Positions 7,761 to 64,000 of a DNA stretch of 64,000 nt are shown piece by piece. Below the pieces are notes generated by a model. The model ran no database searches and was not told where the DNA came from. It saw only the letters and a program-made list of their open reading frames with translations. Within the stretch, counting starts at the first letter, position 1, and each line of letters begins with the position of its first letter. Made by a program: the position numbers and the translations under genes. Origin of the DNA: Macrostomum lignano (lineage: Eukaryota); contig NIVC01001264.1 of NCBI GenBank assembly GCA_002269645.1, positions 261,684-325,683 on the forward strand, read 5' to 3'.

Positions 7761-7964
7761 GACATGCTCGGAAGCCATTCGAGCATGTCTGGTATTTTGT
7801 GTCCCTTTCCTTGTACACCACATTTTCTGTATACCAAATGTACTGCTGTTCTGCGCCACGTGGACTTCAGTGAAGTATTTCTTTCTATTTCTATTGAAAC
7901 TTTTACTCGAAAAGTCTGTGTTTCAATCATATATTATAGTGTGTATTTTGTACTGTCTGTGTCC

Positions 7965-10100: not shown

Positions 10101-10154
10101 CTTGTTGTTCATTTCTGCATTTCTTAACCTGAGTACTTGTAAACTTTGGTTGTC

Positions 10155-20700: not shown

Positions 20701-22720
20701 CTACCTACCTGTCTATTTATCTACCTACCTGCCTACTTATCTATCTACCCGTCTACTTATCCACCTACCTGCCTACCTTTCTTCTACCTTTTTACCTACT
20801 TATCTACCTACCTGCCTACTTATCTACATTCCTCCCTACTTATCTGCCTTCCTGCCTACTTATCTTTCTATCTGCCTACCTTCTCTACCTTCTCTACCCA
20901 TCTTATCTACTCATCTACCTAATTTATCTGAATTATTGCAACCTTATCTACCTATCCGCCTACTTTATCTGAATTATTGCAACCTTATCTACCTATCCGC
21001 CTACTTTATCTACCTTATTTACCTACTTACCTGTCTGCTTAATAACGTACGTACTTATCTACCTCCACCCACCCGCCCGCCCACTGCAGCCGCTGGCCCG
21101 GCCTACTGTGCGTGGCATTCGGCTGGGATCGGGGCTCTCGCCGGCTCAGCAAAAGTCGCCAATTAGCCACAGACTTCTGGCCGGGGGGCCGCGAGCATTT
21201 CCTTCGCCTGCTGGAAGCCCTGGTTGATGCTTCCGGCGTCTCAGTTGGTCCGGACTCGCCTCTCGGCCATCTGCACGTGTCTGTTGGCAAATTCCGCAGC
21301 CTGGACTGCAGCCTGGGCGAGAATAGAGATATTAAAAGTCTGCTAATGCGACAGGGTGCTGCTAATGCAGCTCGGTCCACTGCCACCGCCGCCTCTGCCG
21401 ATGCAACGGAAAGCTGTAATCTTGACTATGACGATTGTGCAGTAGATGATAATAATGAAGACAGTTCTAATGGTTCTGCAGCTGCTGCTGGCGTATCTGC
21501 CGATAAGCCTGTCAACAAAACTGCCGGTATTATAAGCTTTTTTACTGCCAGCACGTCTACTGCTAATAATAATGTTAACTGTGATATCAGACGAGGTGAG
21601 TTTGCTATGCTGTTGCATATATTTCAGATATTTGTGTTGCTAATTTTACCCTGTCACCATTCTTGTCACCCTCTCCCTGTCACCCCTTTCCCTGTCACCC
21701 CTTTCCCTGTCACCCTCTCTCCCTGTCACCCTCTCTTCCTGTCACCCTCTCTCCCTGTCACCCTCTCTCCCTGTCACCCTCTCCCTGTCACTCTCTCCCT
21801 GTCACCCTCTCTCCCTGTCACCCTCTCTCCCTGTCACCCTCTCCCTGTCACCCTCTCCCTGTCACCCTCTCTCCCTGTCACCCTCTCTCCCTGTCACCCT
21901 CTCCCTGTCACCCCTTTCCCTGTCACCCCTTCCCTGTCACCCTCTCTCCCTGTCACCCTCCCTCTCTGTCACCCTCTCCCTGTCACCCTCTCTCCCTGTC
22001 ACCCTCTCTCCCTGTCACCCTCTTTCCTTGTCACCCTCTCTCCCTGTCACCCTCTCTCCCTGTCACCCTCTCTCCCTGTCACCCTCTCTCCCTGTCACCC
22101 TCTCTCCCTGTCACCCTCTCTCCCTGTCACCCTCTCTTCGTGTCACCCTCTCCCTGTCACCCTCTCTCCCTGTCACCCTCTCTCCCTGTCACCCTCTCTC
22201 CCTGTCACCCTCTCTCCCTGTCACCCTCTTCCTGTCACTCTCTCCCTGTCACTTTGTCCCTGTCTCCATCAGCTGTCTCTGCTTGAGTACTCATAATATG
22301 CATAAATAATCTTATATAAAAATTGCAGAAGCCAGGGCGGCGCCAACACATTCCGTAGCCAGTGCCCTAGAAGTGCCAAACGATCGCCAACAGCAAACAG
22401 ACCAGCCCAGCAGCAGCAGCAGTGATGAGCCTCTAACAGTGGAATGCAGCCAGTGCCGGCCACCCCGAGCGGTACTCATGACCGACTGGCTAGAGCATCA
22501 AGATTATCACGCCGCTGTTGACTTGCAACGAAGCATCCAATTGGAGTTCAAAGCTGAACGGGATCGAGATGTACAGCTGCTGCAGCAGTCGCGCAAACGA
22601 CCCGCAACCAGCAGTTCAAGTAGCGCTGGCAAGAACAAGCGTCGAAGTACAACCAGTACTAATAATAACTCTTCGTCCGCTAATGGACCAACTCTTGACA
22701 GTTATTTTCGTAAAGCTTGA
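14784..22720 (+). CDS. POLH: DNA polymerase eta (Y-family translesion polymerase); first exon tentative
   Basis: Exons 14784-14855 (tentative), 15073-15989, 19040-19519, 21090-21595 and 22329-22720. Motifs: [67 protein letters not shown] finger CSQC...EHQDYH, basic NLS and C-terminal PIP-like TLDSYFRKA. Confidence 0.93.
15150..15400 (+). repeat. 30-bp in-frame repeat encoding ([10 protein letters not shown])n in the POLH N-terminal region
   Basis: ACCCCTGCCCCAGCACCCACCCCCTCCGCG repeated about 8 times. Confidence 0.85.
16580..17150. repeat. AGCATCCCCCAGATAGCA-type compound minisatellite, POLH intron
   Basis: Tandem copies. Confidence 0.85.
17205..18000. repeat. 23-bp minisatellite (GTTTGACATGGTGGCTCTTTAAT), POLH intron
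   Basis: Tandem copies. Confidence 0.9.
19565..21065. repeat. 20-bp minisatellite (TACTTATCTACCTACCTGCC), POLH intron
   Basis: Fills nearly the whole intron 19520-21089. Confidence 0.9.
21650..22262. repeat. CTGTCACCCTCTCTCC minisatellite, POLH last intron
   Basis: Tandem copies. Confidence 0.9.
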
Positions 22721-26800: not shown

Positions 26801-29558
26801 GGTAAGATGGAGGGAGAAGAGGGGTGGGATGGAGGGAGAAGAGGGGTGAGATGTAGAGAGAAGAGGGTGAGATGTAGGGAGAAGAGGCTGAGATGGAGGG
26901 AGAAGAGGCTGAGATGGAGGGAAAAGAGGGGTGAGATGGAGGGAGAAGAGGCTGAGATGTAGAGAGAAGAGGGTGAGATGTAGGGAGAAGAGGCTGAGAT
27001 GGAGGCAGAAGAGGCTGAAATAGAGGAAGAAGAAGGGTAAGATGGAGGGAGAAGAGGGGTGAGATGGAGGGAGAAGAGGGGTGAGATGGAGGGAGAAGAG
27101 GGGTGAGATGGAAGGAGAAGAGGGGTGAGATGGAGGGAGAAGAGGGGTGAGATGGAGGGAGAAGAGGGGTGAGACGGAGGGAGAAGAGGCTGAGATGGAG
27201 GGAGAAGAGGCTGAGATGGAGGGAGAAGAGGGGATGGGTAGGGAAAGAGCAAATAAAGATAGAAAAGGGAAGAGAGATACAACAGTGCAGCAGGGAGGAC
27301 ATACATTACAAGTAAAAGCATAGAATACGGAAGTAATGTGTAATAATGTTCCTTTCACTCGCAGTCGCCAGAGCCGGCCCTGATGACCCAAGAGCAGCTG
27401 ATGGAGCGGCTGCGCCAGGACGGCAAGCTGGTGATTGACAAGTCAGATCCCAACAGGCCCCGGTTCACCCTGTGCGAACTGCGCGACGTTCTAACTGAGC
27501 GAAATGAATTGAAAGTTCGCCTGATTGAAGTTGAGGAGGAACTGGTTGCGTACAAGCAGGCTAGGTGAGTCTTGTGTTGCAGGGACTAGCGTGAACTGAG
27601 ACTGATCGATTTCATAGGATATCTAAGCTGAGATTCTAAGAGATTTCCCGGGGATCTAAGCTAAGATTCTAAGAGATTTCCTCGAGAATCTAAGGTGAGA
27701 TTCTAAAAGATTTCCTCGAGGATCTAAGGTGAGATTCTAAGAGATTTCCTCGAGGATCTAAGGTGAGATTCTAAGAGATTTCCCCGAGGATCTAAGGAGA
27801 GATTCTAAGAGATTTACCCGAGGATCTAAGGTGAGATTCTAAGTGATTTCCTCGAGGATCTAAGGAGAGATTCTAAGAGATTTCCTCGAGGATCTAAGGT
27901 GAGATTCTAAGAGATTTCCCCGAGGATCTAAGGAGAGATTCTAAGAGATTTACCCGAGGATCTAAGGAGAGATTCTAAGAGATTTCCTCGAGGATCTAAG
28001 GTGAGATTCTAAGAGATTTCCTCGAGGATCTAAGGTGAGATTCTAAGAGATTTCCCCGAGGATCTAAGGTGAGATTCTAAGAGATTTCCTCGGGGATCTA
28101 AGGTGAGATTCTAAGAGATTTCCTCAAGGATCTAAGGTGAGATTCTAAGAGATTTCCCCGAGGATCTAAGGTGAGATTCTAAGAGATTTCCCCGAAGATC
28201 TAAGGTGAGATTCTAAGAGATTACCTCCGGGATCTAAGGAGAGATTCTAGGAGATTTCCCCGGGGATCTAAGGGAGAGATTCTAAGAGATTTCCCCGAGG
28301 ATCTAAGGACAGATTCTTTACAAATGATTTAAACTCCTAAACGATATCAAAGAGTTCATAAATATCGAAGATGAGGTTTTACACATATTTACAGCTTTTG
28401 ACAGATTCTGTCTAGAAAGCTGAGGGATTTCTTTACTTAGTTATATTTTGACAAGACTGAGATTCAACGTTTCTTCTTCTTTGACTAACAGCGAAAAAGC
28501 GGCTGCGGCGGCTGCTGCAGCTTCGGCAGCGACTGTCGCTCCCGAGGACGCTCCAGTTCAGGGGCCCATCAACCGGGAACCGGACGAGAAACTGTTTCCG
28601 CAGGATGTCGGCTCCAGGATAGGAATTAAGCACTTGTGAGTTTTGGGGGCCACATTCAACCCTGCATGGATGTTATTTCTATTGCAGTTTGTTTCTTTTT
28701 GACCTCTCTGAAGAGTTTTGTTCAGGTCAGTCAGTATCTATCCCTTAGCAACCCTCCCTGAGGATTTTTTGTTCAGGTCAGTCAGTATCTATCCTTAGCA
28801 ACCCTCCCTGAAATTTTTTGTTCAGATCAGCCAGTATTTTTATTCCTTAGCAACCCTCCCTGAGGATTTTTTTGTTCAGATCAGCCAGTATTTTTATTCC
28901 TTAGCAACCCTCCCTGAGGATTTTTTTGTTCAGATCAGCCAGTATTTTTATTCCTTAGCAACCCTCCCTGAGGATTTTTTTGTTCAGATCAGCCAGTATT
29001 TTTATTCCTTAGCAACCCTCCCTGAGGATTTTTTTGTTCAGATCAGCCAGTATTTTTATTCCTTAGCAACCCTCCCTGAGGATTTTTTTGTTCAGATCAG
29101 TCAGTATCTGTTCTTAGCAACCCTCCCTGAGGATTTTTTTGTTCAGATCAGCCAGTATTTTTATTCCTTAGCAACCCTCCCTGAGGATTTTTTTGTTAAG
29201 ATCAGTCAGTATCTGTTCTTAGCAACCCTCCCTGAGGATTTTTTGTTCAGATCAGCTAGTATCTATCCTTAGCAACCCTCCCTGAGGATTTTTTGTTCAG
29301 ATCAGTCAGTATCTATCCTTAGCAACCCTCCCTGAGGATTTTTTGTTCAGATCAGTCAGTATCTATCCTTAGCAACCCTCCCTGAGGATTTTTTGTTCAG
29401 ATCAGTCAGTATCTATTCTTAGCAACCCTCCCTGAGGATTTTTTGTTCAGATCAGCAGGTATCTATCCGTAGCAACCCTCCCTGAAATTTAATTGAATAT
29501 AAAATTTTGTTATTCCTCTTTCAGTTTTCAAGGCCTGTTGGATCGCGTGCAGAACTAA
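23831..29558 (+). CDS. RILPL1: RILP/RILP-like Rab effector with RH1 and RH2 domains, 6 coding exons
   Basis: Exons 23831-24289, 25407-25691, 26582-26704, 27365-27564, 28492-28635 and 29525-29558. RH1 is DVYDAASAIGKDFELLIDRYG...LMPKVIGVLEELE; RH2 is DPNRPRFTLCELRDVLTERNELK; there is also QGPINREPDEKL and the C-terminus GIKHFFQGLLDRVQN. Exact paralog identity within the family is not resolved. Confidence 0.87.
24425..25345. repeat. 33-bp minisatellite (AGAAGAAGCTAGAAGGAAAAATCCCCCCTCCCC), RILPL intron 1
   Basis: Tandem copies, more homogeneous at the 3' end. Confidence 0.9.
25715..26345. repeat. 12-bp-based minisatellite (TTTATGGGGCTG), RILPL intron 2
   Basis: Tandem copies. Confidence 0.85.
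26730..27240. repeat. Purine-rich about 21-bp minisatellite (GAGATGGAGGGAGAAGAGGGT), RILPL intron 3
   Basis: Tandem copies. Confidence 0.9.
27620..28315. repeat. 34-bp minisatellite (GAGGATCTAAGGTGAGATTCTAAGAGATTTCCTC), RILPL intron 4
   Basis: Tandem copies. Confidence 0.9.
28720..29487. repeat. 50-54-bp minisatellite, RILPL intron 5
   Basis: CCTTAGCAACCCTCCCTGAGGATTTTTTGTTCAGATCAG units. Confidence 0.9.
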
Positions 29559-32292: not shown

Positions 32293-32438
32293 GGAGTAGG
32301 ATCAACTCAAAAGCAGCTTTGTTTCAGGGTGGTGATTGGTCCAGTGGAAGCGGCAGCTCTATGGAACAAAGTTCTCTTTAACACAGCAGTTGCATGTAGA
32401 GCTACACGCATCCTGTGAAAGTTGTCCGAGAACACAAC

Positions 32439-35400
32439 ATGACAAGCGACAGCAGCGGGATCAACATCTCCGGTCGCGACTGCACCAGCGATGCATTCAA
32501 CGACAACGACTATTGCTTGACAACGGATGAGTACATTGGCGAGATTCTGGCCTACCTGAGGCCCACAGCCTATGAGATTGTGTTGCTATGCCTATACTGC
32601 ATTGTACTGCTAGCTGGCCTGCTTGGCAACGCCCTGGTGATAGCGGCTGTGCTGCGCAAGCAGACAATGCGGACAGCCACTAATATGTTTCTTGTGAACT
32701 TGGCGCTGGCCGACTTCCTGGTGATTCTGTTGTGCCTGGTGCCAACCGTCATTGAGGATGTGATGGAGAGCTGGTTGTTTGGAGACGCAGCCTGTCGGGT
32801 GCTTAAATACTTGCAGGTAACAAACTACCTTTTTAAACAGAATGTCAATTCAGAAACTGATGCAGACGCAAGGGTGCTTGTCAGCGTCTGGGTGACGACT
32901 GAATGCTTGAGAGACCACACCAGCTGAAGGTCCAGAAGCTCCAACGGGACGAACGAAGTCAGCTAATGCAGACACATGTGATGGGCGTTCTATGAAATTT
33001 TGAGGCTTTACAAGACCGCCCTGAGGCCGCAGTCGTATTGAATACACTGGCGCTTATGGGAAAAATGTGACCTTCTGGCAGAATTGTTAAATATCTCGAC
33101 GATTCGGAGGGCTGGCGACTTGCTTGGTTCGTGTTTGTGTGCCTGCATTGCTCCGTTGATCCGGCGCAGCAAAAACGTCAGGGAGGGGAGGGTTATTCCC
33201 CTCTGGTAGTTCTATTCTTAGAAGCCTCTCAGCTTCTAGAAAGTCCTTTTAGTACGGGGTTTTCTTTGGGAGCACGAGAATTTCTTGCAGTGAGGTTTTC
33301 CCGGATGGTTTCTTGCCAGTTGGAATTTCAAATCAAATCCAGTCTATAGACAATGCTGGACTAGATTAGAACTAGACTAGACTAGAAATAAACTAGACTA
33401 GACTAGAACTAGACTAGACTAGACATAAACTAGACTAGATTAGAACTAGACTAGACATAAACTAGACTAGATTAGAACTAGACTAGACTAGACATAAACT
33501 AGACTAGATTAGAACTAGACTAGACTAGAAATAAACTAGACTAGACTAGAACTAGACTAGACTAGACATAAACTAGACTAGATTAGAACTAGACTAGACT
33601 AGACATAAACTAGACTAGTTAGAACTAGGCTAGACTAGATTTGATTTGAAATTCCGACTGAAAAAACCCTGCGGAAAAACCTCCTGTGGGAAATCCTCGT
33701 AGACCCTTTTCTTTTTGAGTTAAATCGGTTAAATGTAAGGAAAATTAGTCTATTAGAAACTTCTGGCTCCGTCAACTGATTTTTAAAGGTTCTGTTCAAT
33801 ATATAAAAAAGTGTTTATCTTCAAATTAAATTTCTGAAATTCAATTAAGGCAGCTCTAAGAATTGTATGAACTCAAAAAAATCAATACCGTTTAAATTTA
33901 GAGATAATATCTACTCGCATGAGAGAGATTGCCGCAGACAACGCACTCTCGGTACAACAGACAGCTCATTCGATGACTTACGTTGACTTTCTAATCGTCA
34001 GTCAGACATGATAATTAGCATGTCAGAATATGTCAGAAACAGACTCTCTTCCTAAAGCTATACATAGTGCAGCATTAGCTTTCTATTTGTTCGGGCAGGT
34101 CCCAATGCAAGGACCACACAAAATTGAGCTGTTGCAAAAGGATCTTGTCAGTTTTAGACTGAAACTTCATTTTTCACAGACATGTCCCTGTAATTATACA
34201 AATTGCAGCACGCATCACATCTTTTTTATATTCAGCTCCGTACTGGTATACATGTAGCTATACTTTTGGCTTCCTGTGGAAAAGATTTCTGCAGAAATTT
34301 CTTTCGCCTTCTTTCTCATACTGCAGCGGCAACTGGATCAAAATACTAGCAGTTTTACGGGCATATTTTTGATGAAGCCACTATTTAGGCCATATCCCAC
34401 ATTTAGCGAGGAAAATTTTCTAGGCTTTTATAGTGTTAATCCGCAAGACTGGTTCACTTTCTGCAACACCCACGGCTCTTGCTTGTAGCTATCTGAAGCG
34501 TAAATACAGAGACACAACACCAGTCTACCCAGCTTTCAACCACAAAGCCATTGCAAATGGAAGGCCTGAAAATTTACTAATCTTCTCTGCGCTAATCCAC
34601 CACTCACGGTTTTGATGCCGCAAACTGCCGCGATTTAAGCGCTAGCAACGCAGTAGCGAGAAAGTTAATGTAATAAGATGACGCGATTATGGCTTCCTGT
34701 AAACAAATTAAATCGTTCGTTCCATCTCATGACCAATTCGCAGAGGACTTTTGAAAGGGTTTTAGGGGACACAGCGGGAAGGCGCGGACGCAGCTGTGCT
34801 GTTCTCTGAAGAGGATTGAGTTGAGCCCTTGAGCGCATGAGGTGATGATTAGAATTTTCCGGTTTGCACGCTTCGGTAACTGATAATAAATGTGTGCAGC
34901 CCCGAAGGTCAGTTGGTCCGGATCGCAAAAAATTAAAATGCTGACAAAATACTCGGCGGAATTTCGTCACCTGAGTTACAACAACTGCAGAGAAAATACA
35001 CATTCACGTTCGTATACCAGGATGTTATATTTCACATTTGTGCTTTATTGCAACTGTTTTAGTAGTTGCATTTGGCAGCAGTTTTATCACTGGAGACCCC
35101 CCACGGGTGTCCCATTGTGCACGAGTTGTTTACGGCTTGTAAATTGCTGTTATTATAACTTTATTAAGCGCTCTATTTGATTATTATTGCTATAGGCCAA
35201 GTCAAGGCTCATATGTGGGTAATTGCTCAGATTTAAGGCTCATGGGGGATTGCTGAAATGCTTCAATCCTATTATACAGAGACTAACAAAATTCGTAACT
35301 GTAAGTCTTGTGAGCTGTAAATATCGGTGCCAAAATCATAACATACTTTTTAGCTACAGTACACGCACTTAATGTAATTTTAAGGTCAAGTTTTATTGTT

Positions 35401-38400
35401 ACAAAATTTTAGTTCATGTAGACGGGAAATCCTAGCCCCCTCCCGTTGGGAGCCAAAAAATGCAAATATAAGTCTGAATTGACGCTACTGGTATGCTCTA
35501 CGTTACAGAACGCATCGCGCTGAAAGAGGTTTTGCCTAAGATGAATTCGATTAAGAAAGTCTGACTTCTCAAAGCTGAAGTAAAGAATGGCGTAGAGAGG
35601 ACCGCTAGCAAAAGAGGACAGTGAGAGGACAGTGAATGCAGGTGACTGACGGTTTGAAGTTTGACGTGATTTCAGTTAATAGTCTATGGTATTTCCACTG
35701 CGGCGAAAAAATGAGTGCCTGACTGCGGTGCCAAAATGAGTGCCTGACTGCGGTGCCAAAATGAGTGCCTGCGGCGCCAAAATGAGTGCCTGACTGCGGT
35801 GCCAAAATGAGTGCCTGCGGCGCCAAAATGAGTGCCTGCGGCGCCAAAATGAGTGCCTGCGATGCCAAAATGAGTGCCTGCGGTGCCAAAATGAGTGCCT
35901 GCGGTGCCAAAATGAGTGCCTGCAGTGCCAAAATGAGTGCCTGCGGTGCCAAAATGAGTGCCTGCGGTGCCAAAATGAGTGCCTGCGGTGCCAAAATGAG
36001 TGCCTGCGGTGCCAAAATGAGTGCCTGCGGTGCCAAAATGAGTGCCTGACTGCGGTGCCAAAATGAGTGCCTGCGGTGCCAAAATGAGTGCCTGCGGTGC
36101 CAAAATGAGTGCCTGCGGTGCCAAAATGAGTGCCTGCGGTGCCAAAATGAGTGCCTGCGGTGCCAAAATGAGTGCCTGCGGTGCCAAAATGAGTGCCTGA
36201 CTGCGGTGCCAAAATGAGTGCCTGCGGTGCCAAAATGAGTGCCTGCGGTGCCAAAATGAGTGCCTGCGGTGCCAAAATGAGTGCCTGCGGTGCCAAAATG
36301 AGTGCCTGCGGTGCCAAAATGAGTGCCTGCGGTGCCAAAATGAGTGCCTGCAGTGCCAAAATGAGTGCCTGCGGCGCCAAAATGAGTGCCTGCGATGCCA
36401 AAATGAGTGCCTGCGGCGCCAAAATGAGTGCCTGCGATGCCAAAATGAGTGCCTGCGATGCCAAAATGAGTGCCTGCGATGCCAAAATGAGTGCCTGCGA
36501 TGCCAAAATGAGTGCCTGCGGTGCCAAAATGAGTGCCTGACTGCGGCGCTAAAATGAGTGCCTGCAGGGCCAAATTGAGTTCTAACAAAACCGATTCTCA
36601 AATTAAAGTACATGCAGCAATTTAGTCATGTACATGTAGAAGATTTTGCTTTCCCTCCACCTTAAATTCCAAAAGATAATAAGATTAAAAAACCCAATAA
36701 CAACTGTGAAAACTTGCTCACGAAAACTTTACCGCCGACTTTTTCAATTATCAATTTTTTAGCACTTCTAGGATTTGAAATATTTTCTTCCAGAATCATG
36801 TCTTAGATCATTTCTCCTGGTTTACCGTCTCATTTTTGTGTAATTCCCTCACAACTCGCCATCTGCAGCCAGTGTCGGTCACCGTGTCCGTACTGACGAT
36901 GACACTGAACTCGGTTGAGCGCCTACTAGCAGTCTGCTTCCCGATGAAAGTGAAAACAACTAAAAAACGAGTAGGCAGCCTCATCATGCTGGCCTGGACC
37001 ATTGCTCTGGCGTCAAAGCTGCACTACCCCTTCACTATGGAGGCGGTCCCGTTCCCCAATCTGCCAAACGACACCGCCTTGCTGACCTCCTGCCGCTCCA
37101 ATTGGAAACAGCTGGACCAGAACGGCACCGTCTTTATCAATTTTGAAATTGGCGCCAGCATTCTTGATTCCCTGCTGTTCTTTGTCCTGCCGTTCGCATG
37201 GATGCTGGTGGCCTACAGCATGGTGTGTCATCGCCTGTGGCATGCTTCTGTGCCTGGGGAGGCCTCGCATGTTCAGCAGCGCAGTGAGAATTTTTTGTGC
37301 TTTTCAGTATATTGTACAAGTGTCTTGGCGTGCCCCTGGTGCTAAAGCCCCTGGTGCAAAAGACCCTGGTGCTAAAGCCCCTGGTGCTAAAGACCCTGGT
37401 GCTAAAGCCCCTGGTGCTGAAACCCCTGGTACTAAAACCCCTGGTGCTAAAGACTCTGGTGCTAAAACCCCTGGTGCTAGAGCCCCCTGGTGCTAAAGAC
37501 CCCTGGTGCTAAAGCCCCTGGTGCTAAAGCCCCTGGTGCTAAAGCCCATTGGTGCTGGCGCCCCTTGGTGCTAAAGCCCCTGGTGCTAAAGCCCCTGGTG
37601 CTAACATCCCTGGTGCTAAAGCCCCTGGTGCTAACATCCCTGGTGCTAAAGCCCCTGGTGCTAACATCCTGGTGCTAAAGCCCCTGGTGCTAAAGCCCAT
37701 TGGTGCTGGCGCCCCTTGGTGCTAAAGCCCCTGGTGCTAAAGCCCCTGGTGCTAAAGACTTCTGGTGCTAAAGCCTCATGCATTTGGTTAATTTAAAAAT
37801 CATCCCATACGAGCACCTGATGCACTTGCTGTACACCAGGCAGACCCAGCCACCATCGTGCTGGCAGCAGCCGCATCTCCGGATCTGGCCGGAAGTCGAC
37901 ATCCAGCGCTTTGCCAGCTTCCGCGGCTGCCTCGGTAGTCTCTCCGGACTCAACACTGGCTCAGCGGAGGCGCACCGCCCTGATGCTGGTGTCCATCGTG
38001 CTCATCTTCTTCGTGTGCAACCTGCCTGTGCACATTATGCGAGTGGCGTGAGTGCCTTTCGGGTCTGTTGTAGATTCGGCTGCACATATGCTCAAATGGT
38101 AGGCATATCTACTCTAATGAGATTCGTCTCTATATTCAAATGAGAACCGTATTTACTCAGATGAGTACCAATGCCTACCTAGATGAGTACAGATGTCTAC
38201 TCAGATGAGTACCAATGCCTACCTAGATGAGTACAGATGTCTACTCAGATGAGTACCAATGCCTACTCAGATGAGTACCAATGCCTATTCAGATTCAGTA
38301 CCAATGCCTACTTAGTTGAAACGACGTTGGACTCAAAGAGTGCTCAAATCTAACAAAAATAAAGTTCGACATGTCTCTCTCTTTCTCAAATAATTTTCAG

Positions 38401-41400
38401 AAATGTTTACTTCTCGGGCAGGCAGTTCTCGCACTCTCAGCACCACCTGAAAATTGCCATCCAGCACATTGCCGGCACAGCTCACTGGATTTGCTATTTC
38501 AATGCGGCAATCAACCCCATCGTGTACAACATACTGAGTGGTAGGTGGTGTAAAGAACCAGTATTGCAACAGTGGAAGTGCTTTGGTTTTGTTAAAACTT
38601 GAATTCTTCACCTAATATATAGGGTGTTCCTGTGAATTGACATTCCTGTGAATTGACATTCTTGTGAATTGACATTATTGTGAATTGATATTCTTGTGAA
38701 TTGACATTCTTGTGAATTGATATTCTTGTGAATTGATATTCTTGTGAATTGACATTCTTGTGAATTGACATTCTTGTGAATTGACATTCTTGTGAATTGA
38801 TATTCTTGTGAATTGACATTCTTGTGAATTGACATTCTTGTGAATTGATATTCTTGTGAATTGACATTCTTGTGAATTGATATTCTTGTGAATTGACATT
38901 CTTGTGAATTGATATTCTTGTGAATTGACATTCTTGTGAATTGACATTCTTGTGAATTGATATTCTTGTGAATTGATATTCTTGTGAATTGACATTCTTG
39001 TGAATTGATATTCTTGTGAATTGACATTCTTGTGAATTGACATTCTTGTGAATTGATATTCTTGTGAATTGACATTCTTGTGAATTGACATTCTTGTGAA
39101 TTGACATTCTTGTGAATTGACATTCTTGTGAATTGATATTCTTGTGAATTGATATTCTTGTGAATTGACATTCTTGTGAATTGATATTCTTGTGAATTGA
39201 CATTCTTGTGAATTGACATTCTTGTGAATTGATATTCTTGTGAATTGACATTCTTGTGAATTGACATTCTTGTGAATTGATATTCTTGTGAATTGACATT
39301 CTTGTGAATTGATATTCTTGTGAATTGACATTCTTGTGAATTGATATTCTTGTGAATTGATATTCTTGTGAATTGACATTCTTGTGAATTGACATTCTTG
39401 TGAATTGATATTCTTGTGAATTGACATTCTTGTGAATTGACATTCTTGTGAATTGATATTCTTGTGAATTGACATTCTTGTGAATTGACATTCTTGTGAA
39501 TTGATATTCTTGTGAATTGATATTCTTGTGAATTGACATTCTTGTGAATTGATATTCTTGTGAATTGACATTCTTGTGAATTGACATTCTTGTGAATTGA
39601 TATTCTTGTGAATTGACATTCTTGTGAATTGACATTCTTGTGAATTGATATTCTTGTGAATTGACATTCTTGTGAATTGATATTCTTGTGAATTGACATT
39701 CTTAGGAATTAAAACTTTTGTAAATTAACATTCTTGTGAGCTGACATTCTTGTAAATTAAAATTACTTTGAATTAACATTATTGTGAATTGACATTCTTG
39801 TGAATTGACATTCTTGTGAATTGATATTCTTGTGAATTGACATTCTTGTGAATTGACATTCTTGTGAATTGATATTCTTGTGAATTGACATTCTTGTGAA
39901 TTGATATTCTTGTGAATTGACATTCTTGTGAATTGATATTCTTGTGAATTGACATTCTTAGGAATTAAAACTTTTGTAAATTAACATTCTTGTGAGCTGA
40001 CATTCTTGTAAATTAAAATTACTTTGAATTAACATTATTGTGAATTGACATTCTCTTGAATTGAAATTCTTGTGAATTAACATTCTTGTGAATTGATATT
40101 CTTGTGAATTGTCATTTCTGTGAATATCATTGCTGTGAATTGCCATTCCTGTGAATTGACACTCTCTTGAATTGAAATTCTTGTGAATTAACATTCTTGT
40201 GAATTGATATTCTTGTGAATTGTCATTTCTGTGAATTATCATTGCTGTGAATTGCCATTCTTGTGAATTGCCATTCATGTGAATTGACATTCTCTTGATT
40301 TGACAATCTTGTGAACTAAAATTCTTTTAAATCGTCTTTCCAATGAATTTTTAATCATCTGAATTGTCATTCCTGTCAATTGTCACTGATGTTGGATGTC
40401 ACACTTGTGAAATTGAGCTCTGCTTGTGAAGGAGTGATAGATTAATGCCGAGAAGATCGAAGGTTGACAGTGGGAATCTGGCTGTGCTGGGGCCACATCT
40501 GGCTTTTCGTCAGACGACTTCATGTCGCTATTGAAATATTTATAAAAATCCTTAAAACTTATATACTCAATACTCAAGTCTACAGTGCCCAGGATGTTTT
40601 ATCATGTGGGAAGTAATGTTATCTACCAATTTATTAATTCGAAATCCCAAGATGACCGTACTGTTAATAAAAAGCCGCGTTTTTAGATAAAACTATGCAT
40701 CATGCAGCTTTATCTCAGGAGAACTGCTATTAAGTTAAAAGGAATTTTATTATTTAACATTTATGGCTTATTTCCATTAGCATGAGATAATTTTCATAAA
40801 GATTATCGAAAGAATTCCGAAAGAACCGCCCGTGAAGAGTTGGTGGACGAGGCACTAGGGGAAACTCCTTGTAGCATTGCTCACTTTTAACATGTGCTCA
40901 CAACCCTAGATCATTGAAACTTAGAACCCTGGATCATTGACACTTAGTTAGAACCCTGGATAATTGACACTTAGTTTTAGAATCTTGGATCATTGACACT
41001 TATTTTAGAAACCTGGATCATTGCCGCTTAGTTAGAACTCTGGATCATTGACACTTAGAACCCTGGATCATTGACACTTATTTTTAGAAACCTGCATTAT
41101 TGCCACTTAGTTAGAACCCTGGATAATTGCCGCTTAGTTAGAACCCTGGATAAGTGACACTTACGCTCGTAATTTTAGGACCCTGGATCATTGACACTTA
41201 GTTAGAACCCTGGATAATTGCCGCTTAGTTAGAACCCTGGATAATTGCCACTTAGTTAGAACACTGGATAATTGCCGCTTAGTTAGAACCCTGGATAATT
41301 GCCACTTAGTCAGAACCCTGGATAATTGCCACTTAGTTAGAACCCTGGATAATTGCCACTTAGTTAGAACCCTGGATAATTGCCGCTTAGTTAGAACACT

Positions 41401-55742: not shown

Positions 55743-58700
55743 ATGTCGTCGCCAGTGGAGTCAGCGAAGCGCGATCTGGCTCGTGCACTTCGCTCAGAGG
55801 AGCCTCATCGAGTCAAAGCGATACTTCGGTCGCCAGTTGCCGACCTGGCTTGGCTAGACAAGCCGCTAGACAGGTAACTGCGGTTAAATGTACATACTAC
55901 GCACAATCTGTAGAAAACGTTGGGAGCACTGAATATACTGTACCAATACGTCCAGTATTTATAAGCTGCAGTACGCACCTCTAACTTTCAGTTCGTTGCA
56001 GCTTGATAGGGGCTGCAGCATTTTCTGGCAGCAGCTTGAAAACCTGCAGGGTTAAGACCATAGACTATAGCTTCTACTGCTCTAAAGCATAATCTGACTG
56101 ATGTGGTTGCTATGCTATAATGTCTGTGGCACCAAGGGGCACCAAGGGGCTTTAGCACCAAGGGGCTTTAGCACCAAGGGGCTTTAGCACCAAGGGCTTT
56201 AGCACCAAGGGGCTTTAGCACCAAGGGGCTTTAGCACCAAGGGCTTTAGCACCAAGGGGCTTTAGCACCAAGGGGCTTTAGCACCAAGGGGCTTTAGCAC
56301 CAAGGGGCTTTAGCACCAAGGGGCTTTAGCACCAAGGGGCTTTAGCACCAAGGGGCTTTAGCACCAAGGGGCTTTAGCACCAAGGGGCTTTAGCACCAAG
56401 GGGCTTTAGCACCAAGGGGCTTTAGCACCAAGGGGCTTTAGCACCAAGGGGCTTTAGCACCAAGGGGCTTTAGCACCAAGGGGCTTTAGCACCAAGGGGC
56501 TTTAGCACCAAGGGGCTTTAGCACCAAGGGGCTTTAGCACCAAGGGGCTTTAGCACCAAGGGGCTTTAGCACCAAGGGGCTTTAGCACCAAGGGGCTTTA
56601 GCACCAAGGGGCTTTAGCACCAAGGGGCTTTAGCACCAAGGGGCTTTAGCACCAAGGGGCTTTAGCACCAAGGGGCTTTAGCACCAAGGGGCTTTAGCAC
56701 CTAGGGGCTTTAGCACCTAGGGGCTTTATCACCAATGGGCTTTAGCACCAAGGGGCTTTAGCACCTAGGGGCGCCAGCCGCTTTATTTAGTTTAATCCCT
56801 TCTTACTAAAATAGCTTGGTTCTCTTAGTTCGGAATGTACGACTAAACGGATGCATATTGCAATTTAACGTGTTCGTTCACAACAGAGACGGCAGCTGCG
56901 CTCTGCACATCGGCTCCTATTGCGGCCAGGAGGTTGGCGTTCACGCCTTGCTAGAATTCGGCTGCGACCCGAACGTCACCAATCAGAACGGAGAGACTCC
57001 GCTGCACGTGGCAGCCGAGCAGCGGTTCGAGCACATGATCGACCTGCTGGTCGATGCCGAGGCAATCCGGCTTGATGCGGCTCGAAAGCTGGACAGGCGG
57101 ACTGCGCTGCACATTGCCGCCAGTCACGGCTGTTGCGACGGCGTGCGAAGACTTCTGGAAGCCGGAGCTGGCATCGATGTTCGGGATCGGGACGGCAACA
57201 CACCGGTGTTCCTGGCTGTCCAGAACAACAAGTGAGGATTTAGTTTACCTGATGGGTAGCCACGCTTTGTACTTCAGTAGAAGGACGCACCAAAACAAGA
57301 GACATCTTGACAATAATTTCCCGCAGACACCGCGTAGTTCACGAGCTGGTTTCTCGGGGCGCTAATTTGAAGCTGAAGAACAACGGCTTGCAGACTTGTT
57401 TGGCATTTGCCATGAAGCAGAGCCAAGATAAAGCCATGATCAAACTGCTTGTTGAGCGCAAGTCCAACATGGCTCCTCAGCCTGGCACTAGCAGGCAGGC
57501 AGCCGCTCGAGCTACCCGAATTGACAATGCTGCACAGAAGCAACAGTCGATGGCAGGTAGAGATCTGCCTAATCAGGGTAGATTTTTTATGACCGAGTCG
57601 CATAGTAACAAACCTGACCGGCCGAATCTCACACCCAGCAGACAGCTATGGCAGCAACACCCTCAGGTATGGCAGTTTCTAACCGATTGTATAAATCTGT
57701 TCTGTAGTAGGTTTCGATGAGCTTAATTTATTCACTAGCTAAAGGGGGTTGTGGTAGCCCTGTGGTTTGAGCGTCGCCTGCGTCGGAGTCCCGACTTGAA
57801 AGGTTGGGGGTTCGATTCTCGACCCACTCGGAACAGTTTGTGTCCTTGAGCAAGACACTTAACTCTGCATTGCTTCAGTTTACCCAGCTGTAAAATGGGT
57901 GCCAGCATTAGCTGGGGTAATTGAGGGTGTGTGTGGCGACCCCCCCACCCCCAGTCCTTGGACTGAACGCTCAATATCTGGGGCTGAGCTGTCGGTTGCA
58001 CATCTGCCCATTATTAATATTATTATGACTATCAAATCTCATAGCCGCAGACTCGACATCAACAATCGGTCATTCCGGAAGAGCCAACAAAGCATCCTCA
58101 AGCAGCCCAGCACCCTCAGTACCACCAGCAGAAGCAGCAACAGCAGCAACAACAGCAGCACAGGCTTAGCAACGCAAATTACTCGCGCCAACGCGACACG
58201 AAAAGCGCCGGTGTTCAAGCAACCCCGGCCGAATCAGACAAAGAAGATGATGACGAAGAGGATGCATACAGCATGGACAGCAAAATCCGCGGCTTGTGCA
58301 TCATCGTGAACAATCAGGATTACTTCAACTCCGACGATTTCAAAGAACGCGCCGGAACAGATCTGGACGAGAGGTGCTTGGAGCGACTATTTAAATCGTT
58401 GCGCTTTCACGTCAAGATATTCAAGAATCTGGACGCCAAGGATATCTACTGGAACCTCAGCAACTATGCCAAGAGCGATCACAGCGGGTATGACTGTTAC
58501 GTCTGCTGCATCCTGTCTCACGGCACTCTCGGCGGGATCTACGGAGTTGATGGACGAGTGCAGAAACTGTCCGACCTCACCGTGATGCTCAGCAGCACCA
58601 ATTGTCCGTCGTTGGCCGGCAAGCCAAAACTGTTCTTTATCCAAGTGAGTTTCACAGCTGTACTGGTCTCGGCAATCCTCTACTTTCGCACGTTTAATTA

Positions 58701-59556
58701 TTTTTCGAAAATAATGACTTGCCCTTAATTACCGCGAGTAAATATTTGAACTCGCGCGAGTGTACGACGTGGTAGTGTATCGATTTTATGTCTATGTATA
58801 CTAGTTTGAGGCGGCTATTGGCTATGTCTATGGCCAAAACCTGAAATTGCTCTCTGTTCAAGTTTTGGCCTTAGACAATCGCTCCCTGTTTCTTGAGCAA
58901 CAATGGGCCCATGCTAAGGCCCGGTTCAGGGCTATGCATGGCACATCTAAGGCCCTGTTCGACACCCACCTAGATGAGTTTCTGTGGCGCCGTTGCCACC
59001 CGCGCAACACCTTCGGCAAAATACTTTTCTGGGTGGTGCACTACTACGATGTTTAGTGCAACCGAACGTGGTAGCAAACTCGCTCATACCTGAGATGAGT
59101 CTCAAAGTCTTGAAGTTGACCGCCTGAACTTCGAAACCCATGCATCTTTAGGCTTGTCGAGGCCGCTGTCTCCAGCGAGGCGCGCACCATTTCACCGGCG
59201 GTCGGCAAGCCAGCGATCGCGACCCGGCCATGATCCCGATGGCCAACCACGAGACGGACGCGCTGTCAGCCGACCCAGACCAAGAGTACATCCTGCCTGA
59301 TCACGGCGACTTCTTGATTGGCTACGCCACGGTGGCTCAGCACATCGCCCAGCGGCACCGGGAGCAGGGCTCCGTGTACGTGCAGACCCTCTGCGACGTT
59401 ATCGAACGCGGCAGGCACAAGGAGGACCTGCTCAGTCTGCTCACCAAAGTCAAATACCGCGTGTCGAAGCACGTGTTCCACAATGAAGACGGCAGTGTGT
59501 TCGTTCAGATGCCCGAAGTAAAGGAAACTCTGCGCAAGAAGATCTACTTTAAGTAG
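55743..59556 (+). CDS. Ankyrin-repeat prodomain caspase (caspase-8-like catalytic domain), 5 coding exons, about 604 aa
   Basis: Exons 55743-55873, 56887-57231, 57327-57666, 58051-58644 and 59152-59556 join in frame (1815 nt). About 5 ANK repeats (GETPLHVAA, RRTALHIAA, GNTPVFLAV), a Q-rich/acidic linker, p20 (RGLCIIVNN, ERAGTDLD, CCILSHG, CPSLAGKPKLFFIQ/ACRG) and p10 (ILPDHGDFLIGYAT, GSVYVQTLC, QMPEVKETLRKKIYF). Confidence 0.88.
56130..56772. repeat. 16-bp minisatellite (TTTAGCACCAAGGGGC), ANK-caspase intron 1
   Basis: About 39 near-perfect copies. Confidence 0.95.
57748..58030 (+). mobile_element. Same SINE family, full length, in caspase intron 3
   Basis: GGTAGCCCTGTGG...GGGTTCGATTCTCG head, TGTGTCCTTGAGCAAGACACTTAACTC...CAGTTTACCCAGCTGTAAAATGGG core, and an ATT-rich tail. 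Confidence 0.82.
58895..59056 (+). mobile_element. Merlin/IS1595(ISXO2)-like transposase C-terminal fragment in caspase intron 4
   Basis: EQQWAHAKARFRAMHGTSKALFDTHLDEFLWRR...FGKILFWVVHYY* matches the (IE.LW..AK)...HG.S...L..YLDEF.WRR tail of Merlin/IS1595 transposases. Confidence 0.7.
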
Positions 59557-60092: not shown

Positions 60093-60672
60093 CAGTCACA
60101 TGTATACAACAACAACAACAACAACAAGGTACTGCTCCCGCCGGCCACGCAGTAGCCAGAAAGGGGGAGCAGTCAGAAAGCGCGTCTCTGGGCCATTGCC
60201 CTCAGGAAGTCGCATCCCCCTGCTTGGTCCTGGGCGCCAGCGTCACTCAGAAGTCGGTCAGGGTATCGCACCGTTCGCCCTTGGCCTCGCCTCCGCGGTC
60301 CCTGCAGCTTGAGCAGCAGCACGTCGTGTAGCGGCTCAGGACAGCGGGCCTCCGACCGGATGACGTGGCCAGCCAGTCGAAGTCGCCGCCGCGCAGCAGG
60401 TCAGAAGGCCGCGTCAGGCGCGCCCTAGTGTAGAGCGCGGCGTTGGTCTCGCTGCCTGGGCCGCTGCGCACTCCGAAAGCCGCACGCAGCATTGCCGCAT
60501 GCGCAGCGTCCAGCTGCCTCTCCAAGGCGTCCGTCAGGGTCCAAGTCTCGGCGTTGTACAACAGGACAGTCTCGACGACTGCCTGAAACAGCCGAGCCTT
60601 GAGACCGTCGTCCAGGGCCTCAGATTGGAGCACGGAGCGCACAGGTCGAAATGCGGCCCAGTCACATGTATA
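60093..60672 (-). mobile_element. 5'-truncated RTE-like non-LTR retrotransposon with 14-bp TSD
   Basis: The minus-strand peptide RLFQAVVETVLLYNAETWTLT...LL(fs)RRRRLRLAGHVIR is typical of the LINE ORF2 post-RT region. It has a (GTT)n 3' tail at 60107-60128, and CAGTCACATGTATA is duplicated at 60093-60106 and 60659-60672. Confidence 0.85.
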
Positions 60673-60724
60673 TAAATTTCTTATCATAGCTATTAATATT
60701 TATAGAATAGTACATACATTTCTG

Positions 60725-60922
60725 GCCCCATCAGTGACATCTGCGTCAATGAGCCTGACAGTCTTCCTGACCCCATCAGTGACATCTGCATCAATGAGCC
60801 TGACAGTCTTCCTGACCCCATCAGTGACATCTGCATCAATGAGCCTACAGTCTTCCTGACCCCATCAGTGACATCTGCGTCAATGAGCCTACAGTCTTCC
60901 TGACCCCATCAGTGACATCTGA
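60725..60922. repeat. 44-45-bp tandem repeat
   Basis: CTGACCCCATCAGTGACATCTGCATCAATGAGCCTGACAGTCTTC repeated about 4.5 times. Confidence 0.85.
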
Positions 60923-61094
60923 GCAAAAGTCAATTTCGGTTTAATTGTCAAATACTATCGCAGAGCTGCATTTCTGCACAAATTTCAATGTACATCTTAG
61001 CCACATAACACAGACACTCCCTCTACGAAACAAAGGCTTATCACATAGGCATAAGCTTTAACACAGAAGCCCCCTTTTCATTAGCTAGATGATC

Positions 61095-61103
61095 TCTCTT
61101 CCT

Positions 61104-61171
<68 letters not shown>

Positions 61172-61640
61172 TCTCTCCAACACAGACTCTTTCTGTCTTC
61201 AACACAGACTCTCTCTCTCTCCCTCTCTCTCTCTACCACTCTCTCTCTTCAACACAGACTCTCTCTCTCTCTCCCTCTCTCTCTCTACCACTCTCTCTCT
61301 TCAACACAGACTCTCTCTGTCTTCAACACAGACTCTCTCTCTCTCTCTCTCCCTCTCTCTCTCTACCTCTCTCTCTCTCTCTCTCTCTTCAACACAGACT
61401 CTCTCGGTCTTCAACACAGACTCTCTCTCTCTCTCCCTCTCTCTCTCTACCTCTCTCTCTCTCTTCAACAAAGACTCTCTCTGTCTCCAACACAGACTCT
61501 CTCGGTCTTCAACACAGACTCTCTCTCTCTCTTCAACACAGACTCTCTCTCTCTCTTCAACACAGACTCTCTCTGTCTTCAACACAGACTCTCTCCGTCT
61601 TCAACACAGACTCTCTCCGTCTTCAACACAGACTCTCTCG
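61095..61640. repeat. (CT)n microsatellite interspersed with CAACACAGACT
   Basis: Direct inspection. Confidence 0.9.
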
Positions 61641-61965
61641 TCAACACAGGAAACGTATTTCAACATGTGTCAACGACCGTAAGAAATCAAAATGAGATTG
61701 GAATGAAAAACTCAAGCTAATTAACAGATATTTTCTGTATGCTTGGAACAATAAGTTGCTGGTAGAAACTAACGTACGGGAATGAGATTTAAATTGTTTA
61801 GCTGTATTTGCCTTTTAGTATCTTTTTAATAAAAACCAAAGATAACCCAATCGATATTGAATAACTGATCGACAACTGAGGATAATTTAGACAACAAACA
61901 GGGGAATTGAATTTAGTTAGTTATATAAGTTGTTGATCGGCTTCAAGCCACACTGATGCATTCGC

Positions 61966-62314
61966 TCAATCGTGCATCGGAAACGTGAACTGGAAGTTCT
62001 TGCAGATGCAATGGCAAACACTTCGCTTAGGCGGCCCGGCCATGGCGCAGGTCGGCACCCTGTAGCAGGAGAGCCGGCATACATTCTGCCAGTAGAGCTG
62101 CGTGTTAACTGCAAGGTGAGGCGAAATCAGATTTATTGAAAGCTACTGTATAACAAAAATATCGAATCGGCAATGTCTTACTCCAGTTGATCGGCCAACG
62201 CTTTTTCATCGACAGCTGCGGCACGTCGTTCTTGCCTTTGGCGCTGTCCGCACCAGTCAGCAGACAAGCCAGCATGGCCATGGCAGCCAGGCAATAGACA
62301 GTAGCAGCCTGCAT
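61966..62314 (-). CDS. Small secreted cysteine-rich prepropeptide (91 aa), 2 exons; function unknown
   Basis: Exons 62314-62182 and 62108-61966, with a 73-nt GTAAG...TTGCAG intron. Translation: MQAATVYCLAAMAMLACLLTGADSAKGKNDVPQLSMKKRWPINWINTQLYWQNVCRLSCYRVPTCAMAGPPKRSVCHCICKNFQFTFPMHD*. It has a hydrophobic signal peptide, a KKR site, six Cys and an upstream TATA box. Confidence 0.68.
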
Positions 62315-62402
62315 GATTGCGTTGCTAGAAATTTGGTCAGCGAGTTTTCTACAAAACTGACAAGTCTGGGGCTGAATAAAACTGTCCCCTGGCTTAAGAT
62401 GT

Positions 62403-62441
62403 CTTTTATAGACGATGGTCGGGATTTTCACCAGCCAATCA
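62403..62441 (-). promoter_or_regulatory. TATA box and CCAAT box upstream of the Cys-rich peptide gene
   Basis: CTATAAAAG on the minus strand at 62411-62403, AGCCAATCAG at about 62432-62441, and an Inr-like ACAGTT about 27 nt downstream of the TATA. Confidence 0.5.
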
Positions 62442-64000
62442 GAAATTGTCAATGAATTCATCAACGCTTGAAACGTTCAAAGGTTATAAGAGATTAAGGC
62501 AAGATGGGAGAAACTCTAAATAAAAAACCAAGAAATTTCGGGAAATCCTGAAGAACCTGAGTGATCGGGTGGGGTGTTTCATAGATGTTACAATTAGTGA
62601 CCAGTGATAGTGACAAGCGATAATTTATGAGGTTACAAGTGCTGCAGAGTTTCGTTTCACAGAATGATTTGCAAATCTAGCGACAAGGTACAAGCTCTCT
62701 GAGTAGTGACTCAAAATATGTCTATGGCCAAATCAACGGGTGCCTCGCTCGAACCCCCCATCTCGAAAGCTTGCTTAAGATCTATGGTAAGATCTGTCTT
62801 ACGCAGTCGTCCCGTGTATAGCATAAGATTAATCGAAGGGCGTTTCTGAAAGTCATCTTTGTCGCAGCTTTTGTGATTGACAGGTGCTTCTGAATTCCTT
62901 GCAGAAGTTGCTCCTTCTTAAGGGTGAAGAAATTCCGCACACGCTTGACCATTCTTAGTAAATCCGTGTGTAAAAATGTAACAAGTCCGTACCAAGGCGC
63001 AAGTTTACGATCTCACATAAAAAGAGCCAGAAACATACGAAGCTATAGTTTCGAGAAACAGCTTCCTCGCATAAGTTTACGCGGTCGTAGATTTGCGCCA
63101 AATCTTACGTACGGCCCAGTTGCGAGAACTTTGATCGCAACGCCTACGCATGACCGACCCAGCTTACGTCTATTGCCAGCGCGTAAGTTGCTTTCGAGAA
63201 AGACCCCCAGGACCCTGAATATGCTCTGAAAAGTGCTCTATGAAACACTCTGTGAAGCACAACAAATCTCTGCACTCTGATCGGGGGTGCCATGCAGACT
63301 CCTCGCCTTTCACCAAAGCTCCGACACTCTTGAATCAGTGTGATACCGATACCGGAATTTTCGGGAAATGAAAAACCTAATGATTATCACAGAGAAAGCG
63401 CGGCTTGCAAATTCCGGTTGACCCCCACTGAGCTCCTGGCTCTGGAAAACTTCAGAGAATGAGCTGAGACACGGCTTCAGTGTTCAGCGGTCACTGTACC
63501 AGTGGACTTCATAGTTTCAAGCTTCAACGTAGCTATACATAGATAGTCAATCCAATCTATTTATAACCATTTTTACCGAATCTTTTCTTCAATCTTCACG
63601 TCGATATCCTAGTCTTTTAGTCAGAAATAGTCGCAAGTCTGCACAAAAACACCTGTAACCAACTGCTTGATTCGTATTCCGTAGACAACGGTGCATATAA
63701 CTATAGGCCCACGCATACATTTTTATCTCAACAAAACACCTGCGAAATCCCTCCTTTACCAGCGAGCCCGCATCAATTTTTATCCAGAGAGAGAGTAATT
63801 ACCGTGGGCGTCAATTTTCAGCAATTTTCTGTTGCTTTATTTGCTTCTCAGTGTCGGGATGTGGGTGACAGCCATTTTTTTCACCTAAGCCGCCTCACAA
63901 TAATGGCCACCCACGGCTTACAGTTTTTCGACGCTGAAATCAGTAGGAACAGCCTTTCTAGATTCTTAATTTCGTATGACAAGCTGCTGCTGCTGTAACT

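Follow-up and report, generated by a model that had tools for sequence, protein, structure and literature searches.

The terminal 64 kb of the Macrostomum lignano contig NIVC01001264.1 (GCA_002269645.1, assembly Mlig_3_7), referred to below as the window, carry on their minus strand a small two-exon gene for a cysteine-rich peptide, with 1.5 kb of sequence upstream of it. The coding sequence (CDS) of 276 nt, stop codon included, encodes a prepropeptide of 91 amino acids (aa), MQAATVYCLAAMAMLACLLTGADSAKGKNDVPQLSMKKR followed by WPINWINTQLYWQNVCRLSCYRVPTCAMAGPPKRSVCHCICKNFQFTFPMHD, which divides into three consecutive parts: MQAATVYCLAAMAMLACLLTGA, DSAKGKNDVPQLSMKKR and WPINWINTQLYWQNVCRLSCYRVPTCAMAGPPKRSVCHCICKNFQFTFPMHD. 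According to our analysis, both the gene itself and the secretion of its product are well supported. The features of the locus, listed in window coordinates from 5′ to 3′ along the coding strand, are the following.

62459..62461, minus strand: upstream ATG of the 140-aa GenBank model PAA70134.1.
62431..62442, minus strand: inverted CCAAT box, reading CTGATTGGCTGG along the coding strand and CCAGCCAATCAG along the opposite one; the TATA box follows 24 nt downstream.
62403..62410, minus strand: consensus TATA box TATAAAAG.
62315..62380, minus strand: presumed 5′ untranslated region (5′UTR), assuming a transcription start site ~25-30 nt downstream of the TATA box.
62314-62312, minus strand: start ATG.
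62314-62182, minus strand: exon 1, 133 nt.
62249..62314, minus strand: signal peptide, residues 1-22, MQAATVYCLAAMAMLACLLTGA, with predicted cleavage between TGA and DS.
62198..62248, minus strand: pro-piece, residues 23-39, DSAKGKNDVPQLSMKKR, 17 aa, cationic, isoelectric point (pI) 10, ending in the tribasic KKR.
62182..62197, minus strand: exon 1 share of the mature peptide, with the codons of WPINW and the first nucleotide of the I45 codon.
62181-62109, minus strand: intron, 73 nt, phase 1, GTAAGACATTG...CCTCACCTTGCAG (GTAAG...TTGCAG).
62108-61966, minus strand: exon 2, 143 nt, TGA included.
61969..62108, minus strand: coding part of exon 2, the Cys-rich domain (I)NTQLYWQNVCRLSCYRVPTCAMAGPPKRSVCHCICKNFQFTFPMHD with all six Cys.
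62023..62028, minus strand: internal dibasic K72-R73 (PPKR followed by S), candidate second cleavage site, predicted at the β1-β2 hairpin turn.
61966..61968, minus strand: stop TGA.
61825..61830, minus strand: candidate poly(A) signal ATTAAA, 136 nt 3′ of the stop codon.

The unspliced reading frame meets a stop codon inside the intron, so that only fragments of the gene appear on a prokaryote-style list of open reading frames (ORFs); the first-pass annotation of this DNA was right in attributing the absence of the gene from the ORF track to a 73-nt intron. In the region, 106 GT..AG pairs keep an ORF, of which two pair a GT[G/A]AG donor with a CAG acceptor, and only one of the two, 62182->62108, retains the high-scoring frame. 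The donor GT[G/A]AG and the acceptor CAG are the enriched cis-splice motifs of M. lignano (PMC8629364), and both ends of the 62181-62109 intron fit them. The proposed 62182/62108 junction is thus the sole splice pair that has both the species motifs and the coding frame. It is also used by the two public models of the gene, as described below.

A protein identical to the peptide across all 91 residues (100%) is present in UniParc as UPI0007A231D6, and GenBank holds a 140-aa form, PAA70134.1, a hypothetical protein BOX15_Mlig007017g1 [Macrostomum lignano] with a UniRef100 entry (n = 2). Both contain the string ...WPINWINTQ..., hence both use the 62182/62108 junction. The locus of PAA70134.1 lies at the end of the contig, which the final 12,035 nt of the window match at 100% identity, and a contig look-up by exact protein returned no record for the 91-aa form and the source contig alone for the 140-aa form. 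The annotation of Mlig_3_7 was built from StringTie/TACO assemblies of RNA-seq data with experimentally defined ends and with ORFs called by TransDecoder (PMC5730564); since it is RNA-seq-derived, the junction has indirect transcript support. The earlier description of the peptide as unannotated is therefore true of the ORF track only. The gene is already public as a hypothetical protein, and what our analysis adds is a corrected start, a hypothesis of processing and fold, a non-canonical six-Cys framework with a cystine-stabilised-helix (CSH) motif, and the orphan status of the product.

For an estimate of coding potential, a codon table was compiled from 1,640 codons of recognisable exons within the window, and candidate regions were scored by log-likelihood. 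The spliced 91-aa CDS reached +0.41 bit/codon in frame 0, with a GC content at third codon positions (GC3) of 0.76 that is restricted to the CDS, compared to +0.05 and +0.21 bit/codon in frames 1 and 2, -0.25 to -0.74 bit/codon in all frames of the intron 62181-62109, and about -0.6 bit/codon in the 3′ flank. Within this flank no AATAAA was found. A tblastn search with the peptide against all 64 kb of the window matched only the peptide itself, and no Rfam RNA family reached the threshold anywhere in the window.

Both promoter boxes reported in the first-pass annotation are present; the CCAAT box, however, is inverted, with ATTGG on the coding strand at 62439-62435, and we take it to resemble an NF-Y site. 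The combination CTGATTGG-N24-TATAAAAG occurs once in the window, compared to an expectation of 0.01. The motif TATAAAAG alone is found 10 times (3.25 expected from shuffles, none of which reached 10), five of the copies being within the AT-rich first 5 kb of the window; given these ten occurrences, the TATA box alone is weak evidence. The start codon at 62314 stands in the context AATCATGC, with A at -3. No spliced leader (SL) trans-splicing acceptor of the form [T/C]TNCAG lies between the TATA box and this ATG, and the sequence TTTCTAG followed by CAAC, 10 nt upstream of the ATG, mismatches the enriched SL acceptor motif. Trans-splicing is not required by the gene model.

The 140-aa GenBank model starts further upstream and thereby adds 49 codons (62315-62461, minus strand), which score -0.14 bit/codon with GC3 of 0.45; this extension spans the CCAAT and TATA elements, and its ATG is upstream of the TATA box. 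It is probably an artefact of longest-ORF annotation. The extension would bury the signal peptide and is likely to hide the gene product from secretome screens. The codon statistics, the species-typical splice motifs and the unique CCAAT-N24-TATAAAAG module support the 91-aa model. With the junction present in the public models, the codon score, the splice pair and the promoter module, the feature is confirmed to exceed chance.

The first-pass annotation described the product as a secreted prepropeptide with a KKR processing site, and at the motif level this is what we found: a generic convertase-processed secretory precursor, in which a signal peptide and a basic site precede a Cys-rich domain. 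The hydrophobic core covers residues 3-19, with a 9-residue Kyte-Doolittle mean that peaks at 2.57 over residues 11-19, and the -3/-1 rule is satisfied at A22 (TGA before DS). Cleavage by a convertase after KKR39, which the sequence suggests, would release the 52-aa mature region described earlier. Its array, C-x3-C-x5-C-x10-C-x-C-x-C (Cys 55, 59, 65, 76, 78 and 80), was reproduced in our analysis; two more Cys (8 and 17) lie inside the signal peptide, and their removal leaves an even count of six. For the mature 52-mer we calculate 6,206 Da, a pI of 8.9 and a charge of about +3.9. Its aromatic residues are 3 Trp, 3 Phe and 2 Tyr, so that the label "Trp-rich" refers to 3 of 52 residues. W40, W44 and W51, at positions i, i+4 and i+11, would share one helical face. 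The second possible cleavage site noticed in PPKR is also present, as K72-R73.

The whole precursor and the exon-2 domain were modelled with AlphaFold2 (AF2) from the single sequence, without an alignment. The model of the full precursor was weak, with a pLDDT of 57 (about 70 over residues 50-90), whereas that of the exon-2 Cys domain, with a mean pLDDT of 81, was fairly confident. Common to both models are a helix from ~44/47 to 59/60 that carries C55-x3-C59, a strand 64-68 with C65, a turn G69-P-P-K72, a strand 73-79 with C76 and C78 (C80 is just past it), and a strand 84-88. In the exon-2 domain the helix covers residues 47-59, the strands cover 64-68, 73-79 and 84-88, and CxCxC falls on the middle strand. 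The CxxxC/CxC pairing that the first-pass annotation cited as the mark of CSαβ defensins is present in formal terms, the helix carrying the first motif and a strand the second in this model, and the arrangement corresponds to a predicted CSH motif. Because the four-residue turn sets C65 opposite C76, C55 and C59 are left to pair with C78 and C80, as in the classical geometry of a cystine-stabilised helix, and we infer the disulfide map C55-C78, C59-C80 and C65-C76.

A Foldseek comparison of both models with the PDB gave best E values of about 1 and no match to a CSαβ defensin, a scorpion toxin or a mytilin, a method that is weak for peptides of <50 residues and was here applied to single-sequence models. 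The closest shape was a designed disulfide miniprotein of H-E-E-E type (TMt 0.62, E = 4.6, not significant), and the other best shapes were generic α+β3 modules.

Extensive homology searches left the peptide an orphan, with no detectable relatives in the searched collections. A k-mer and HMMER search of 5.8 billion clusters at E<=10 returned the identical protein only, in a single cluster, and an exhaustive phmmer search of 1.84 billion representatives returned the peptide itself and one 1318-aa repeat protein (P0003), which was rejected as a relative since its score was the sum of six weak matches to the signal/pro region. A scan of JGI metagenomes yielded 103 pattern matches, 0 of them confirmed. 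Neither the precursor nor the mature peptide had a match in Pfam at E<=10, and searches of NCBIfam and PDB sequences gave nothing meaningful, with no PDB sequence matched by the mature peptide; matches to amicyanin at E of about 1 were regarded as noise. The search for paralogs and orthologs suggested in the first-pass annotation therefore gave no paralog in the 64-kb window and no ortholog in the searched collections, which evidently hold no transcriptomes or genomes of other Macrostomum species.

Taken as a whole, these data lead us to a tentative functional reading: the gene may encode a lineage-restricted, convertase-processed, three-disulfide secreted effector, for which a host-defence or antimicrobial-like role is slightly favoured over that of a signalling ligand. 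In the proposed mechanism, a TATA/CCAAT-type promoter would drive a two-exon mRNA for the 91-aa prepropeptide, the signal peptide (1-22) would send the precursor into the endoplasmic reticulum, and three disulfides would form there. A convertase of the furin or proprotein convertase (PC) type would then cut after KKR39 and release a 52-aa, 6.2-kDa, mildly cationic peptide (about +4, pI 8.9), in which an amphipathic N-terminal helix (W40, W44, W51, C55-x3-C59) would be pinned on the middle strand, C76-x-C78-x-C80, of a three-stranded sheet. The released peptide would act extracellularly on microbial membranes or envelopes; if K72-R73 were also cut, it would consist of two chains joined by all three disulfides. 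The leaning toward defence follows from the cationic, aromatic-rich and disulfide-locked α/β character of the peptide in a phylum without canonical families of antimicrobial peptides (AMPs). The TATA-type promoter, which suits a regulated gene, was counted in the same direction.

Innate-immune effectors of flatworms are almost unknown, and homology searches report that the standard lophotrochozoan AMP families are missing (PMC10414684). If both the helix-on-sheet three-disulfide fold and the action on microbes were true, the peptide would provide a concrete example of what replaces these families, and M. lignano is a tractable model (transgenic, competent for RNA interference and transparent). 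If the peptide were instead a ligand or a gland product, its gene would join the other secreted genes that are restricted to one taxon and would be of local interest.

Several points weigh against the proposed reading. Cationic AMPs usually carry more charge than +4, and a cationic instead of an anionic pro-piece is found more typically in the precursors of hormones or toxins than in those of defensin-type AMPs. The fold comes from a single-sequence model, and the disulfide pairing would follow from the strand register and not from coordinates. In the codon analysis, 11.5% of random stop-free 91-codon windows scored as high as the peptide CDS or higher; this null set takes in real exons and coding-like minisatellites and other repeats, and the codon score is therefore supportive and not decisive. 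The lack of a homolog in the searched collections also counts here. The identifier Mlig007017 was not found in the parts of the supplements of PMC5816591, PMC5730564, PMC7336406, PMC12896417 and PMC5946080 that were searched, nor was it found by a full-text literature search.

A signalling peptide would account nearly as well for the modest net charge, the cationic pro-piece and the dibasic sites. A neuropeptide, hormone or pheromone-like molecule, cleaved by a PC2-type enzyme at KKR39 and possibly at K72-R73 into a disulfide-locked one- or two-chain receptor ligand, is a possibility that we regard as rather unlikely. The precursor is organised as in prohormones: a short cationic pro-piece that ends in KKR follows the signal peptide, and a further KR is predicted to be exposed at a hairpin turn. 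Under the proposed disulfide map, a cut at KR would leave two linked chains, in principle reminiscent of two-chain hormones, and for a ligand there is nothing unusual in a charge as low as +4. However, there is no C-terminal Gly for amidation, no similarity to known families of peptide hormones was found, the Cys array is unlike the insulin/relaxin type, and hormones are seldom orphans, as they usually evolve together with receptors that are conserved.

An improbable alternative is a non-immune gland product, either a prostate or seminal-fluid protein or a component of rhabdites, adhesive or mucus. A small, secreted and lineage-specific gene would be expected of such a product, a TATA-type promoter would suit strong, tissue-specific expression of a secretory gene, and, according to two studies, reproduction-related secreted genes of Macrostomum evolve fast and many prostate-limited transcripts have no homologs (PMC7336406, PMC5977470). 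Still, no feature of the sequence indicates a specific gland, and the gene was not found by its identifier (it may carry others) in the portions searched of reproduction and germline supplements.

We give a similarly low probability to a young or non-functional ORF, with a transcript that exists but is hardly translated or has no coding function, and with signal-like and Cys features that arose by chance. The complete lack of relatives in very large databases, the shortness of the ORF and a codon score that is not extreme (11.5%) would be expected of such an ORF. Against this stands the coincidence of a hydrophobic N-terminus with a -3/-1 site, KKR, six CSH-compatible Cys, an optimal in-frame splice and a GC3 of 0.76 confined to the CDS, in addition to the confident single-sequence AF2 fold of the Cys domain, which is uncommon for random ORFs. 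Finally, it is very improbable that the true product is the 140-aa GenBank protein from ATG 62461, with the hydrophobic segment internal as a signal anchor or in an unsecreted protein: it is the deposited CDS (PAA70134.1) and implies a transcript model that reaches upstream of 62461, but its extension is non-coding in composition and covers the promoter elements, TransDecoder chooses the longest ORF, and the other public entry, UPI0007A231D6, begins at its M50, which is ATG 62314.

The surroundings of the peptide gene contain several recognisable genes and a large amount of repetitive DNA. Its neighbour, at 56816-58728 on the plus strand (L001 4445-8258), encodes a 599-aa protein with ankyrin repeats and a caspase domain (Peptidase_C14), an unusual architecture for a death protease; the two genes are arranged tail-to-tail, ~3.2 kb apart. 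Just downstream of the 3′ end of the peptide gene, a 45-nt unit repeated 4.5 times in tandem (97% match) extends over 60722-60921, and a ~550-nt compound repeat based on (TC)n, with periods of 22, 44 and 92 nt, occupies 61093-61639, also downstream of the gene. The 146-aa ORF at 60247-60687 on the minus strand (…VLLYNAETWTLT…) has no Pfam match; we take it to resemble the C-terminal region of a reverse transcriptase from a non-LTR retrotransposon, and it may be a degraded fragment of a long interspersed nuclear element (LINE).

Further from the peptide gene, the plus strand carries two exons of a rhodopsin-family G protein-coupled receptor (7tm_1) at 32415-32927 and 36836-37345, separated by an intron that holds a ~1-kb minisatellite (35605-36613); no evidence links these receptor exons to the peptide. 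Exons of a Y-family DNA polymerase (IMS, IMS_C, Pol eta/Rev1 HhH) are found at 15067-15993 and 18978-19559 on the same strand, the ORF of the first one opening with a tandem peptide repeat of PAPTPSAT type that may be intronic or UTR and not coding. Exon fragments on the plus strand at 5772-6221, 11306-12049 and 23831-24301 contain the SH3BP5 domain, Ima1_N (a NEMP-like inner nuclear membrane protein) and RH1 (RILP homology). Long minisatellite arrays extend over 7651-8760, 9707-10132, 11900-12531, 16389-17101, 19541-21166, 21663-22296, 26627-27391, 35605-36613 and 38592-39699. Lacking stop codons in several frames of both strands, the minisatellites of the window imitate ORFs of 150-540 aa, and several of them are within introns of real genes.

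Among the known frameworks of disulfide-rich peptides, two were rejected on cysteine spacing. Inhibitor cystine knots (knottins) have six Cys in the order C-C-CC-C-C or similar, with enough residues between C5 and C6 to form a β-hairpin, whereas in the peptide these two are separated by one residue, there is no CC pair, and a long helix is predicted by AF2. The insulin/relaxin type has 2 Cys on one chain and 4 on the other, which likewise disagrees with the spacing in the peptide.

In a survey of 33 flatworm species that used hidden Markov models (HMMs), BLAST and tBLASTn and included both M. lignano assemblies, no homologs of CSαβ, big-defensin or myticalin were found (Irvine et al., 2023; PMC10414684). 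According to the same survey, Cys-rich peptides dominate the predicted AMP-like repertoires of flatworms, and the Cys-rich candidates are experimentally untested (PMC10414684). Our peptide is like the helminth "AMP-like peptides" of Irvine et al. (2023) in that it has <150 aa, a signal peptide, a propeptide site and >2 Cys; neither it nor its sub-motifs were found in the portion of the tables that was searched, which does not establish absence from the tables as a whole.

The first-pass annotation placed the peptide near defensins and mytilins, but membership in either was not borne out, in agreement with the flatworm survey. There was no support from Pfam, NCBIfam or PDB sequences and no CSαβ match by Foldseek; the peptide has 6 Cys and none before the helix, and the layout of its precursor is reversed in comparison to mytilin. 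Canonical mytilins have the array C-X3-C-X3-C-X4-C-X11-C-X-C-X-C-X2-C with four disulfides, are encoded by four-exon genes, and are made as a signal peptide, a mature peptide with a charge of +7 to +10, and an anionic C-terminal extension (PMC7168163). The peptide is similar in having C-x3-C near the N-terminus, a loop of ~10-11 residues and C-x-C-x-C, and it resembles the mytilin array minus the first and last Cys. In contrast to mytilins, it has six Cys and three bonds instead of eight and four, two exons instead of four, a charge of about +4, and no sequence similarity. Its pro-piece is cationic and N-terminal, and in place of an anionic extension at the C-terminus only PMHD follows the last structured strand; in addition, it has an extra Trp-bearing N-terminal segment of 15 residues and a predicted third strand. 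The peptide disagrees with mytilins in each defining feature that was compared.

The nematode ASABF-6Cys-α resembles the peptide in that it also has six Cys, keeps the CSH cysteines and lacks the reference C2 of the CSαβ array; a non-canonical third bond was suggested for it by its authors (PMC5116183). Unlike the peptide, its sequence places it in the nematode ABF family, to which no similarity was found, and it keeps the reference C6, whereas the peptide instead has an extra Cys adjoining CxC (CxCxC).

With the CSαβ superfamily of defensins and scorpion-toxin-like peptides as a whole, the predicted product shares a small size, secretion, a cationic character and three disulfides. In the reference array the CSH core consists of C3, C4, C8 and C9, i.e., CxxxC on the helix and CxC on the strand, and the C2-C6 bond "completes the CS-αβ fold," with C2 N-terminal to the helix and C6 on the penultimate strand (PMC5116183). 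The AF2 models suggest that the peptide has the CSH part of this array, C55-x3-C59 being placed on the helix and C76-x-C78(-x-C80) on the strand. There is, however, no Cys between KKR and C55, so that the reference C2 is missing and a C2-C6 bond is impossible; instead, an extra Cys, C65, follows the helix, and the third disulfide would staple the β1-β2 hairpin. The predicted order is α-β-β-β with CxC(xC) on the middle strand, compared to αββ or βαββ with CxC on the last strand, and no HMM, sequence or Foldseek match connects the peptide to the superfamily. It is doubtful, and in our estimation quite unlikely, that the peptide is the first CSαβ-like host-defence peptide of Platyhelminthes, with a permuted framework composed of the CSH core and a hairpin staple and without the N-terminal Cys, either as an extremely diverged remnant or as an independent reinvention of the scaffold.

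Overall, this comparison suggests that the peptide may work like a CSH/CSαβ mini-protein, yet it is not classifiable as a defensin or a mytilin. If the predicted fold and the action on microbes are both true, it would represent a new six-Cys framework among the cystine-stabilised scaffolds.

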